From contig JAHDYR010000062.1 in the NCBI GenBank assembly GCA_019828565.1, positions 1,436,421 to 1,500,420 of the forward strand: 64,000 nucleotides of DNA, in the 5' to 3' direction. How positions within the stretch are numbered: the first letter of the stretch is position 1; each line of letters begins with the position of its first letter. The notes under the pieces were generated by a model, which was not told where the DNA came from, searched no databases, and saw only the letters and a list, made by a program, of their open reading frames with translations. Below are positions 54,254 to 60,153 of this stretch, piece by piece. The DNA comes from Carpediemonas membranifera BICM. Lineage: Eukaryota; Protista; Fornicata. Both the position numbers and the translations under genes were made by a program.

Positions 54254-56527
54254 TGTCGCGCAGTTTAGTATCATCGATCATGTGCTATTGAAGGGTCAAA
54301 CAATGTGTTTACACTGCGCAACACTGCCCTGTCTCCCTCCTACTCACGTCTTAAGTCGGTAGGGAGATCGTCTTCTCCAGGGCTTCCACAAAGCGTCTTC
54401 TTCGTGGACGTCAGCTGCAAACATCACAATCGCTCACACGTCGTCTCATTGTCTTCTATTCCACATTAAATTCACTTCTACACTTGTATATGCTGGTAAT
54501 GGTGTTCATCGTCGGATCTTATATGTCATCTTCATCTATGATCAGCTGCAACAAGATGGAGATATATACGATCAAAGCCTCCATCAAGCAAGCTTTCAGA
54601 CAGAACTACACCGAAGAACGGAGAGTGGGGGATTACGCCGCAGCAAAATATCTCTACTCATGCCTGCTGGCCCGGCTCGCGGTTGAATGCTATGCGCAGC
54701 GCCGGCAACTCCCCCTACATGACGCCGACTTCCACAACGGACTGCTCACTCATCTACGCGGCGGTCATCCGGGTCAGGCCTACGCGGCCATCGTGCAGTC
54801 GCTCGACACTCTGCCGATGTGGCGGGAGCCTACCACGCAGGATCTGGTCGCGTAGCTCGAAGGTCGTGCGGAGTCGCATGGAGTGAGTCCCAGTCTCCGG
54901 AAGTGGTTCATCCGATACGCCAACTCTGTGAAGCTGTGGCTCGCCCGCACGGTGACGACGTACCGTGACAGGCTACAGGGCACCCTCGCCCGACTCGAAG
55001 AAGCTCTCGCAGGTGTTGGCTCTCCGGCCTTCTTCGAGCAGGAGTTGGCCGGCGTTCACGCCATCCTCAACATGGTCAACCCTGAGTTCCTTGCGTGTCT
55101 CCTCTCGCTGTTCTGGGCGACTCACATGGGTGAGAACGACGGGCTCCCAGTCTCCCAGGCTGCCCCACGCATTCTCTCTTGCGTCTGGGCAATTGCTGAC
55201 GGAGTGGAGACGTTGAGTGGCCTCATCAGCCACTTCAACGGGGAGTACTCGATGTCGCTCCGCCAGCCTCGCCTCGTGCCGATCGTGCCCATGGCCCCCG
55301 TCCGACCGGGCTTCATGGCCTACAGTGAAACGATGGGCCTACTGAACGGGAACTTCTGTCATCGTGTGGGAATTAATCACGCACTCCCACACGCCACCAA
55401 ACCGTTGACAGAAGAGCAGAAAAGACGCTACCGGGACAACCCCAGGTCAATGGGCCGTCTGCTCAGCCTGAGCACCGATGGGGTCTGTGTGGCGGTGACT
55501 ATTAAGAGAGGATTCGGCCGCTATCGGCCACAACGTGATGCGAGCATGCCTGTTCGAAAGCGAGCGAAAGGGCGGGAGAAAGAGCGCCCCCGACTCGGGA
55601 CCAATAATGCCGAGGCTCCGCCCGCGCCGGATCCTGATGCCCACCTCATGGGGTTCGACCCGGGCGCGAGGTCCATCGGAGGGTATTACATCAGGCACCC
55701 CGATGGCACCACCAGCTCCGGCGTCCTTCCAAAGTGCGGATACACTAAGACGCCAAGTTTCGGCTTTGATATGACGGCCGCGTCGTTCAAGAGCACAAGA
55801 CTAGTGAGTATCAACAACTCTATTAGGTTTGTGCTGGACAACGCGAACGACATTTTCGAGGCTGGAACGCGTAAGTCTTTCCGCCGAGTGCGCTTTGCGA
55901 ACCACATCCTTCGCCAGAAGCACTTCGCCCGCTGCGGCCAACAGTTGGCTCGGGAGTTCGGTTGGCTTCGCCACCATCCCATCGCCACCCCCATTCGCCT
56001 GAAAGCCTTCTACGGGAGCTCGGGATTCACCACGCCTACTGGTATGTTCATTCCTTGCGCGCCATATCGAAAGTTCGCGAGAGAGATAGTACCCCTTCTC
56101 AAGAGTCGATCTTAACATGGTTAACGAGGACCGCACCACCGTCGTCTGCCCTCACTGCCACGCCCCCTACAAGCGAGTTCGTCCGCGTGATGACCAGCAC
56201 GTTCACCCACATCGTGTGATGCTCTGCGAAAATCCACAGTGCCGTGGTGCTCAGTGGCGCGCAACAGTTCCTGATGCTCTGAATGTTGATCATCGGGACA
56301 AGAGTGCTGCAGAGAACATCCTGTGGCGTTCTCTTGCCACGGAAGATGAGCTCAGTGGCTCTCCGTTCAGTCGCATATCCCACGTCTTCAAACTTCATTC
56401 CAGTATCATCAATTGGCTAACCGCCAACATTCGTCTACGGACGGATGATGTTGTGCAGTTTGGCACTTTGATCGTTCCTTTCAGGCCCAGTCTGGAGGTT
56501 CGAAAAATGTGTTTATACTGCGCAACA
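54254..56527 (+). mobile_element. Putative non-autonomous Fanzor-carrying element bounded by homologous palindromic units
   Basis: Fanzor ORF between unit L (54254-54323) and unit R (56449-56527). The outer ends TGTCGCGCAGT / ACTGCGCAACA are imperfect inverted repeats. No transposase and no clear TSD. Confidence 0.55.
54556..56380 (+). pseudogene. Fanzor1 (eukaryotic TnpB homologue) RNA-guided RuvC endonuclease, interrupted by TAG at 54853-54855 and a frameshift at about 56090-56113
   Basis: N-terminal YTIKASIK; SLSTDGVCV; RuvC-I GFDPG (55657); helix RRVRFANHILRQK; AFYGSSGF...CAPYRKF; RuvC-II VNEDRTT (56126) with CPHC; CENPQC; RuvC-III RDKSAAENI (56297). The last frame stays open to 56716. 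Confidence 0.88.
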
Positions 56528-57186: not shown

Positions 57187-60153
57187 TCACGCCTCGTCAG
57201 GCTTGGGGAACTTTCTCTCGAGCCAGGGGATTCGCATCTCCACGAGGTCCTCGGGCCCGATGCCCTTGAGGTCTCGCGTGCCGACAGACTCGAAGAGAAG
57301 CCCGCCGACCTCTGTGAAGTCAGCCTCCTTGATGAGCTCGGCGGTGGCCTTGCTGAGCAGGATCTGGCCGCCTGCCGCCGCCTTGCAGACCCTCGCGGCC
57401 ATGTTGACGTCCATGCCGAGGAAGTCGACCTTGCGGCTGACAGTGTCATACAGGAGCTGGGGCGTGCCGGTGTGGAAGCCCATGCGGATCCTCAGACCGC
57501 GGAACAGGGGCACGCGGTGCTGGGTCGACCTGGGGCAGCTGAGGCAGTGGTCAGGGAAGTGGCCCGTGTCCTTGGGGGCGCACGCGATGTCGCAGCTGAG
57601 GCAGTACGAGGCGCCGGCGGTGTACTCCGAGGCGTAGGCGGGGTGGGCGAGGTCCGGCCAGTCCGCCGCCAGCAGGGCCATCTGGGCCACGGAGCAGAAC
57701 TTGGCGCAGTCCGCAGGTGAGCTGAACGCCACCATGAACGCGTCGCCCTCGCGCTTGATCTCCATGTTAGGCCAGATGATCCTATGCGCGGTGAGGACAT
57801 CCCTCATGACCTGGGTGTGAACCTGCAGCGCCTTGGCCATGGCGTTGGGGTCTGCCGCCCACATGGCGTCGCTCGACTGGACGTTGGAGAAGAGTATCGT
57901 CGTCGTGTCCGACGATAGGTCAGCAGTGTCGCTAGCCCCGAACATCACCACGTTGAAGCTCAGGTTGCAGAACTGTGTAGTGACGGGAGCAGCCGTCTCG
58001 ATGGGGCTGGCCTCCTCGAACGCCTCGCCCTCCGTGTCGACCGAGTCGTAATGACTGAAGACGACTGAGCCCGAGTCCTCCACTGACCCGGGCATGCGGG
58101 CCTCGAAGTCGTCCGAGTCGGAGTCCGAGATGATGCCGGCCGACATGATCTCGATGTTGTCGTCGTCACAGATGCGACAGCCCGCAGGCAGCCGCCGCTC
58201 GGCGAAGGGCATGCGGGAGACCCGGTCGGCCTCCTCTGCTTGTGCAGACGTCCCGCGGTCCAGGCCGACGAAGCCCTCGTCGGTCCAGTCCGTGATGCGG
58301 CGGGCAGCGATGCCCACGCGGGGGGATACCGGAATTCCGGAAACAGTGTAGCCCCGCCGGAAGGGGTTAGCGGCGGGGTTGGATCGAGACCTGCCCCGAC
58401 CCAGGAGACGGGACGAGGAGGACGACACGACGGTCTTTCCACTGGGCAGGAACCTCTCAGTCGAGGATTGCCGTTCAGACCAGGCCCGCTGCATGGAGTT
58501 GGGCGACCCCCCCGTCTGAAGGGAGAGCAGTTCAAACGAAGGCGTCGTGCACCTGTCGTCGCCCTCCCCGAACTCGTTGTGGTGACCGCTCATCGTCGAC
58601 CCGACAGTGAACGTGCTGAACTCACCGCCGGACAGGTGGATGAGGATCGGTGCCCCGATTGCCGCACGGGCCTTGCGTTGGAGCGTGACGATGTCCTCGG
58701 ACAACACCACATAGGCTGCGAAACACCAGAAGATGACGGCGCCGTACCTTGTGTGGAACTCGCGGCTGATCGGGTCAGTGAGCGACAGCACGCGGCTCAG
58801 CAGCTGGTTCTTGGTCCCGGACATCAGAATGAGTCGCTCCCCGAGTCGCACCGAGTTGGCGGTCCTTAGCCCGCGTGCAGAGACCTGGTGCACGAAGACA
58901 AGTGAGAGGATCTCATAACCGCGGTGGTCGAAGCCGCACACCTTCCCGAGCGGGTGGAGCGCGCTCATCTCGGTCATCAGCGTCGTGATCTCCTCCGAGG
59001 GCGCGTCACACCCCGACCATCGGGCGTACACCTCTCCCGCAGGCTTGTGGTCGATCTCTTCGATCATAAACCCGTCCTCGGAAATCTTCGTGACCATGCC
59101 GCCGGTGGCACTGGGAGAGAACCCGTAGCTGGAGACTGTCTTGACGTCGCACTCCGTCCAGAACGCCACCACGGCCATGGCGTTGGAGCTGACAAGCTCT
59201 TGCGTGACAATCCACATCGGGTCGCGATCAATGAGCTCCTCCCCACTTGCATTGCCCCCCACGATGCTCACATCGGTCCCGAAGAACGTCTGGATCGAGC
59301 TAATGATGTCCTCCTCGTGGCCTTGGGTGTTCAACACGGCCACGGCCTTGGGGACCTGGCGCCGGGACGAAGACACCTCCATGCCCGCGGACTGGCACGA
59401 GATGGACGCCGCCTCGAAGCCTATGACCGGAGCAGGCATGTCCTCCTTGCAGACTGCCCCGATCCCGACTACGCCTGAGTCGACCAGTGCAAAGATGGCG
59501 ACATGCATACCAGTGACGAGGGAGTCCTCTGTGATGGCCGCGGGGTGCTCGCAGATGCCGATGAAGGGGATTTTTGTCCCGAACTCCTGCTGTATTGTCT
59601 GCTGAAGTGCGGTGGGGTCGTGCTTGGGGTGCGAGGTTATCATGAGGAAGCTCGGCTTGCGGTTATACAGCTTGCACTTCAGATGGAAGGCCGCGTCGTG
59701 CACCGCTGCGGCCGTGTCTCGGAAGGGTGATACCGCGGTGGCAGTGATTGTCTTCTCGCGAGGCCGATATTGCTCATCGCTTTCACTGTACTTGCTGACG
59801 AAAAAAGTAGTGCTCCGCTCGAACCTCAGTCTCTGCAGCAGCATGTGGAAGTCCAGGGAGTGCTTCGTCAGCATCCCCAGAGGCGTGGTGATCCGTACTG
59901 GCTGGCCGTACTTGCAGCCAACGGACGAATAGAGCGAATCGACGCTGAGATTGGCCATTGGGATCTTCAGACAGCGCGTCCGGGACCTCTTAGTACCTTC
60001 AATCGCCTCGTCAGGCCGTGCTTTCTTGTCATGTTCACTTGGCTTGAAGTTATCGTGGAGAATCGCTCTGAATTGCACTCTTTGCGACTGTGTTTCTCTG
60101 CCACGTCGTTTTGTTTTCGATCGGGGCCTCGAGGGCATGGTACCACCATCCAT
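57187..60153 (-). CDS. FIST-domain sensor fused to a class III adenylyl-cyclase-like domain
   Basis: FIST: IPFIG, SIVGGNASG, GGMVTK, IEEIDHKPAGEVY, HPLG, FWC, GGEF. Cyclase: ILFSNVQSS, EIKREGDAFMVAF, GLRIRMGFHTG, DFLGMDVNMAARV, GGQILLS, LKGI. Confidence 0.88.
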   Translation of the reverse strand: MDGGTMPSRPRSKTKRRGRETQSQRVQFRAILHDNFKPSEHDKKARPDEAIEGTKRSRTRCLKIPMANLSVDSLYSSVGCKYGQPVRITTPLGMLTKHSLDFHMLLQRLRFERSTTFFVSKYSESDEQYRPREKTITATAVSPFRDTAAAVHDAAFHLKCKLYNRKPSFLMITSHPKHDPTALQQTIQQEFGTKIPFIGICEHPAAITEDSLVTGMHVAIFALVDSGVVGIGAVCKEDMPAPVIGFEAASISCQSAGMEVSSSRRQVPKAVAVLNTQGHEEDIISSIQTFFGTDVSIVGGNASGEELIDRDPMWIVTQELVSSNAMAVVAFWTECDVKTVSSYGFSPSATGGMVTKISEDGFMIEEIDHKPAGEVYARWSGCDAPSEEITTLMTEMSALHPLGKVCGFDHRGYEILSLVFVHQVSARGLRTANSVRLGERLILMSGTKNQLLSRVLSLTDPISREFHTRYGAVIFWCFAAYVVLSEDIVTLQRKARAAIGAPILIHLSGGEFSTFTVGSTMSGHHNEFGEGDDRCTTPSFELLSLQTGGSPNSMQRAWSERQSSTERFLPSGKTVVSSSSSRLLGRGRSRSNPAANPFRRGYTVSGIPVSPRVGIAARRITDWTDEGFVGLDRGTSAQAEEADRVSRMPFAERRLPAGCRICDDDNIEIMSAGIISDSDSDDFEARMPGSVEDSGSVVFSHYDSVDTEGEAFEEASPIETAAPVTTQFCNLSFNVVMFGASDTADLSSDTTTILFSNVQSSDAMWAADPNAMAKALQVHTQVMRDVLTAHRIIWPNMEIKREGDAFMVAFSSPADCAKFCSVAQMALLAADWPDLAHPAYASEYTAGASYCLSCDIACAPKDTGHFPDHCLSCPRSTQHRVPLFRGLRIRMGFHTGTPQLLYDTVSRKVDFLGMDVNMAARVCKAAAGGQILLSKATAELIKEADFTEVGGLLFESVGTRDLKGIGPEDLVEMRIPWLERKFPKPDEA

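Follow-up and report, generated by a model that had tools for sequence, protein, structure and literature searches.

The closest described systems are the Fanzor nucleases, which are marked by a DPG motif and an alternative glutamate, with a TDG motif setting Fanzor1 apart; a three-stem RNA scaffold has been described for Fanzor1 (PMC10711439). All documented Fanzor1 carriers are DNA transposons, for which a usual TAM rule has been set out (PMC13565253). On carriage of Fanzors by retroelements, a literature search found only a review denying such carriers, and it found no paper naming both Fanzor and Carpediemonas.

The locus described here lies in a 64,000-nt stretch (the window) of Carpediemonas membranifera BICM (contig JAHDYR010000062.1). 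The host is a free-living protist. The locus holds a mobile element that carries a Fanzor-type gene and has the same left end as a larger element of LTR type; such a carrier is not documented for Fanzor nucleases.

A divergent Fanzor1 protein

The first-pass annotation had read the gene (54556-56380) as a Fanzor1-type nuclease with all catalytic residues intact. The identity is supported by fold comparison and by profile-profile alignment, and the catalytic D/E/D by sequence-profile alignment. The window pieces were searched apart and a natural sibling, L005, open over 592 codons, was folded; no joined protein was used.

Single pieces gave no significant match in Pfam or phmmer, the PF07282 match (E 0.048) falling short of the cut-off, and the close homologues are annotated as hypothetical proteins of C. 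membranifera. A profile of 12 Carpediemonas paralogues, searched against 1.84 billion representatives, returned outside matches that are weak (E 7e-7 to 1e-3) and that all carry a Cas12f1-like TNB domain; no relative outside the Carpediemonas-like matches scored better than E 7e-7 in that set. When aligned by hhalign to TNB-domain proteins (99.7%, E 3e-26), TDG, DPG, the alternative Glu, both Cys pairs and RD fell in register.

The motifs lie where they had been annotated: STDG at 55471-55482, DPG at 55657-55665, NEDRT at 56123-56137, CxxC at 56147, CxxxxC at 56225 and RDKSAAENI at 56294-56320. The WED TDG (55474-55482) is conserved in three subfamilies and the RuvC-I DPG is invariant among paralogues. 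The alternative Glu (56126-56128) stands in an E-x6-CxxC pattern and aligns with DEFRTS of the TNB-domain proteins, and also with GtFz1, there at a non-significant score. It is followed by the zinc finger (56147-56242) and the RuvC-III Asp (56297-56299).

The AlphaFold2 model of L005 is modest (pLDDT 55.8, pTM 0.41), with low confidence in its N-terminal half. Its top four Foldseek matches were SpuFz1 (E 1.2e-6 to 3.4e-6), aligned end to end over about 640 columns, followed by PpFz1, ApmFz2, Cas12f and GtFz1. GtFz1 and PpFz1 aligned over their full length (627-784 columns) and Fanzor2 over only 256, at low TM scores (0.25-0.29). VIA agreed on a Cas12/TnpB RuvC fold, with Z 10.9 to the Fanzor2 RuvC and Z 9.4 over 407 residues to GtFz1. 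By the features examined (TDG, DPG, alternative Glu, zinc finger and RD), the window gene is a divergent Fanzor1 and a predicted nuclease.

Three subfamilies that are 40-50% identical all keep D/E/D, a sign that catalysis was once under selection. No purifying selection is seen among present copies of the window subfamily (pN/pS 0.73 overall, 1.17 in the RuvC region), as would be expected for neutral decay.

Decay of the window copy

As first annotated, the frames 54484-54855 and 54883-56115 are one frame interrupted by a single TAG (54853-54855), and the third piece lies in a different frame. Piece 1 (54556-54855, +) runs for 99 codons from the ATG to this premature stop, where all near-full siblings have CAG. 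Piece 2 (54856-56104, +) holds the REC region, the WED TDG, the RuvC-I DPG and the bridge helix, and piece 3 (56105-56376, +) the alternative RuvC-II Glu, the zinc finger and the RuvC-III Asp.

The frameshift between pieces 2 and 3 had been attributed to one extra C near 56091, which the sibling alignment refutes: siblings have 14 more nucleotides after 56104, in the strand leading into RuvC-II, and the missing 14 nt are present in public contigs too. A third coding lesion had been overlooked, a 4-nt deletion after 56376 that alters the C-terminal tail. The proposed two-edit repair is therefore wrong and would create an artificial junction and a wrong tail, since the frameshift is a 14-nt deletion rather than an extra C; the protein length judged from siblings is about 635 aa, not the ~600 aa of the proposed joined protein. 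The window copy also has a 5-nt non-coding deletion at 54411.

Whether the copy was inactivated or mis-sequenced had been left undecided. The lesions are private to this copy and none lies in a homopolymer, which makes real decay more likely than assembly error. The read check drew on public unitigs, which match the right junction without mismatch in two runs; no contig has the TAG allele. It is very improbable that the breaks are assembly errors in a copy that is intact in the cell. Such errors could occur in a long-read assembly of a high-copy repeat, where several siblings do show 1-nt homopolymer indels, and the absence of the TAG allele from public unitigs would fit them. A substitution together with 14-, 4- and 5-nt deletions outside homopolymers does not, and neither do the error-free right junction nor the similar decay of most siblings. 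With one stop and two frameshifting deletions, the window copy is probably dead, to judge from its sequence.

Sibling copies, which the first-pass annotation had proposed as a source of an active nuclease, were found in the genome. As to intact paralogues, every copy of this subfamily in the assembly has a lesion somewhere between its start and stop, and one more distant paralogue (C18) has an open frame of 643 codons with no stops.

Structure and copies of the element

The gene is the only one in a 2247-bp non-autonomous element (54281-56527, +) that starts with TGTG, ends with AACA and has no transposase; its right junction is found in public contigs. The left end is a 43-nt TG...CA unit (54281-54323, +), the first 31 nt of which also stand, without a difference, in the direct repeats that bracket a 4.55-kb element. 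Positions 9-43 of this unit recur at 86% identity as a 35-nt direct repeat at the right end (56493-56527, +), which ends in ACA. No terminal inverted repeat extends beyond TGT/ACA (3 nt). A purine-rich tract on the minus strand (54324-54345) abuts the left unit and resembles a PPT, a role it might play.

A 5-bp target duplication (TSD) would be expected around the element; its left copy lies at 54276-54280 (+), and the right copy (56528-) is degenerate and one base short. A 5-bp TSD flanks 18 of the 26 copies compared, against 0.03 expected, or 19 with L015, in which a short stretch is duplicated inside the left end.

Searching the genome (24.2 Mb, 69 contigs) gave 78 DNA matches and 253 end-motif matches to the element, and counts of left ends and inner tracts put the number of copies in C. 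membranifera at about 100. Most are internally deleted with both ends spared. A second subfamily starts with the same 15 nt and has one target site in common with the first (L015). At L015 and L012, elements of two subfamilies lie in tandem with a 5-nt spacer; L015 has the same TSD, one site having been used twice. The pairs L005/L006, L009/L010 and L018/L019 have shared or swapped flanks, the marks of ectopic recombination and inversion between copies. Near-identical element pieces also occur at low depth in a public run labelled as another organism (X5), and may come from contamination or a co-cultured source.

The element is flanked by ordinary host genes, a PIH1-domain gene on its left and an LSm gene on its right, with a WD40 gene beyond; no viral context was found, and nothing at the locus is a toxin or an effector. 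A further frame (57187-60153, -, 988 aa) reads as a protein with a FIST-type-looking N-terminal region and an adenylate/guanylate cyclase-like C-terminal domain.

An LTR-like partner element

Across the genome, identical 31-nt heads recur in direct orientation at spacings of 4551-4557 bp, in at least 14 pairs. The 4.55-kb element that they bound is, from its sequence structure, a young LTR-like element. Copies lie on contigs C1, C3, C11, C13, C14, C15, C22, C26, C27, C54 and C65, among them C3:174183-178766 and C54:62267-66854. Because the 31-nt left end is common to these direct repeats and the Fanzor-type element, mobilisation by an LTR-type integrase is suggested. In three places a Fanzor-type left end stands back to back with a 4.55-kb element, 5-7 nt apart.

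The genome is rich in Ty3/gypsy reverse transcriptase and integrase genes; its 24 Mb hold 716 integrase and 1519 reverse transcriptase candidates, a very heavy load. None of the best 150 of 577-1519 candidate matches to rve, RVT_1 and H2C2 lies inside the 4.55-kb element, which is probably Ty3/gypsy from its size and structure. The PPT-like tract was not found in it as an exact 11-mer. Heads that lack both the inner tract and a partner end resemble solo units.

At L013 (195-2786, -), an open frame of 864 codons runs from the 5' half of a Fanzor copy straight into a Ty3/gypsy reverse transcriptase-RNase H. The family fused there is very young, with about 16 near-identical copies. This fusion was rejected as evidence for the 4.55-kb partner: its reverse transcriptase does not land there and belongs to a different Ty3 family.

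Insertion beside a fixed host motif

Left flanks that are otherwise unrelated have GCANKWTW in common at -21 to -14 from the left end (54260-54267, +, in host DNA of the window). Genome-wide, the motif stands at exactly -21 in 72 of 161 left-end heads, against 0.06 expected. The right flank is without conservation and the motif is on the left, so insertion is oriented. Two 4.55-kb elements (C54 and C65) have the motif at -21, the other 12 of 14 have none upstream of the outer head, and the solo-like heads often carry it.

At the window locus, the reverse strand of the motif lies 9 nt before the ATG of a neighbouring gene, and a long ORF starts within 35 nt at 10 of 24 insertion sites (background 19%, p 0.008). 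Across the window, the loose motif shows no excess ahead of long ORFs (9/44, against the background of 19%). A promoter role for GCANKWTW is plausible, with weak support from these sequence counts. A form of the motif also occurs within the repeats of the element itself. The segment 56449-56463, which supplies the 5' arm of the predicted terminal stem, matches both the target motif and the inverted right end, so that the last 79 nt make up a small unit of inverted repeats.

A TAM adjoining either end was sought and none was found, no bases beside the TSD being conserved. Since the TSD is random and the adjoining bases are unconserved, the usual rule of Fanzor carriers cannot apply here (PMC13565253).

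A predicted structured RNA at the 3' end

The last ~115 nt of the element (56413-56527, +) are predicted to fold into two short hairpins and a long stem (z -6.0; no shuffle was as good). The second hairpin has a C-UACG-G loop, and the stem closes on the final base of the element. Subfamily B, largely different in sequence, keeps the hairpin order and a similar first hairpin (z -3.7), and its second hairpin has a C-UCCG-G loop, also of UNCG type. Subfamily C has the terminal stem at a score that is not significant. Rfam gave no match to the region. The predicted three-stem fold matches the Fanzor1 scaffold and would make this an omegaRNA-like region.

In a probable RNA run (X3, with a poly-T end and intron skipping in the LSm gene), contigs fall mainly on both element ends and on deletion joints. 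This suggests that short deleted copies are transcribed, though the contigs give no strand, transcript ends or level.

Route of movement

LTR-retrotransposon hallmarks are found in part: TG...CA ends and the 5-bp TSD are present, and identical terminal repeats are absent. In every one of the 26 copies the left and right repeats differ at 3-4 fixed positions, and the right repeat has no counterpart of the first 8 nt. Scored at a T/C marker, 8 pairs of repeats disagree and 3 agree on C/C. L002 has one private substitution, C>G at 7 nt from the end, in both of its repeats; some copying between element ends could account for it, as could gene conversion. Because the identical-LTR test failed, the carrier is not filed as an LTR retrotransposon. 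We infer from its ends that it works like an integrase-inserted LTR derivative.

True retrotransposition is unlikely, if not greatly so. The LTR partner would package the element RNA along with its own and reverse transcribe it, and a non-canonical strand transfer would restore just the outermost ~11 nt of the repeat. The L002 substitution, the three C/C pairs, the minus-strand PPT-like tract abutting the left unit, the very many internal deletions and the element pieces in X3 all fit. The fixed differences between repeats and the missing outer 8 nt on the right do not; no primer-binding site was recognised, the PPT-like tract was not found in the partner as an exact 11-mer, and L002 has its other explanation in gene conversion.

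A non-autonomous cut-and-paste DNA transposon, moved by a Ginger/IS481-type DDE transposase, is distinctly unlikely. The direct repeat would then be a duplicated transposase-binding end, and the 4.55-kb element either that transposon or the product of end capture. TGT...ACA termini and a 5-bp TSD fit such enzymes, the ends of the element are not homogenised, and one internal-deletion lineage with discordant ends is found at no fewer than three sites (L009, L010 and L012). Documented Fanzor1 carriers, all DNA transposons, also favour it (PMC13565253). Against it, the termini match in inverted orientation over only 3 nt, the repeats of the 4.55-kb partner are direct rather than inverted, solo-like units exist, and no such transposase was found in a search that was not exhaustive.

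That Fanzor itself makes the insertion site, the motif being a TAM with a cut 12-17 nt downstream at a 5-nt stagger into which the element is pasted, is very improbable. Fixed distance, fixed orientation and staggered cut do resemble Cas12-family geometry, but no guide could pair there, since the sites have unrelated sequences beyond the motif; the Fanzor-less 4.55-kb partner has the same geometry twice, and Fanzors cut further from the TAM (PMC10530073).

A model for the element

With moderate confidence, we take the locus to be a decayed non-autonomous mobile element that carries nothing but a divergent Fanzor1 and a 3'-terminal omegaRNA-like scaffold, mobilised in trans by an LTR-type integrase and capable of homing in its ancestors. 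Its ends would be attachment sites borrowed from the 4.55-kb LTR-type, probably Ty3/gypsy, element, whose DDE integrase would insert it in trans. GCANKWTW would be a promoter-like site bound by protein, to which the integration complex would be tethered, and the tethered integrase would insert in one orientation with the 5-bp stagger, an integrase-type signature, seen at the insertion sites. Donor DNA might be made by odd reverse transcription or at the DNA level.

In intact ancestors, Fanzor, scaffold and a right-flank guide may have cut the empty allele, with homologous repair copying the element across. Such homing would be favoured in a host reported to be without NHEJ; in metamonads NHEJ is absent, and recombination repair has been argued to be essential (PMC8516963).

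A fuller version is put forward tentatively, as possible and a little short of probable: a Fanzor1/omegaRNA module captured between Ty3/gypsy attachment ends, inserted by integrase at a promoter-like motif, homing under RNA guidance with a relaxed or distant TAM, and the first OMEGA nuclease on retroelement machinery.

The nuclease alone is one more Fanzor1, but from an unsampled lineage and about 15% identical to those with solved structures. Of greater interest are the element that carries it, the motif at which that element inserts, the RNA structure predicted at its 3' end and the LTR-like partner. They raise two questions: of what use a Fanzor is to a carrier that may never leave its site, and how its targets are chosen when no TAM adjoins the insertion. 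The precision and single orientation of targeting beside an 8-nt motif are relevant to site-directed integration, and GCANKWTW may mark the Carpediemonas core promoter.

Comparison with known systems

Ginger and IS481EU DDE transposons are known for TGT...ACA termini and a short TSD, both shared here; the Carpediemonas element differs in having no TIR beyond 3 nt and in that no transposase was found.

TRIM/LARD derivatives of Ty3/gypsy and the promoter-targeting Tf1 and Ty3 are generally known to combine TG...CA ends, a 5-bp TSD, short direct repeats, solo-like units, a PPT-like tract and a fixed offset from a host motif, all of which have counterparts here. Compared with TRIM/LARD, the repeats of the Fanzor element are unequal with fixed differences, its cargo is a nuclease, no primer site was found and no pol was found in its partner among the matches scored.

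Fanzor2 and the IS607 pro-Fanzor TnpB (ApmFz2, 9B0L) share DPG and the alternative Glu, and the RuvC half gives the best Z. Only that C-terminal half aligns, whereas TDG and a long helical REC region are present here; the Carpediemonas element has neither a serine recombinase nor a second ORF, and it makes 5-bp TSDs.

Fanzor1 (SpuFz1, 8GKH/9CEU; GtFz1, 9CER; PpFz1, 9CF1) is separated from the Carpediemonas system by about 15% identity to SpuFz1, a longer zinc-finger spacing, an insertion with no TAM beside it and a carrier without TIRs. The two have in common the domain order, TDG in WED, DPG, a Glu seven residues before CxxC, the zinc finger, RD, a size of about 635 aa, structural alignment over the full length and, as predicted here, a three-stem 3' RNA that overlaps the element end.
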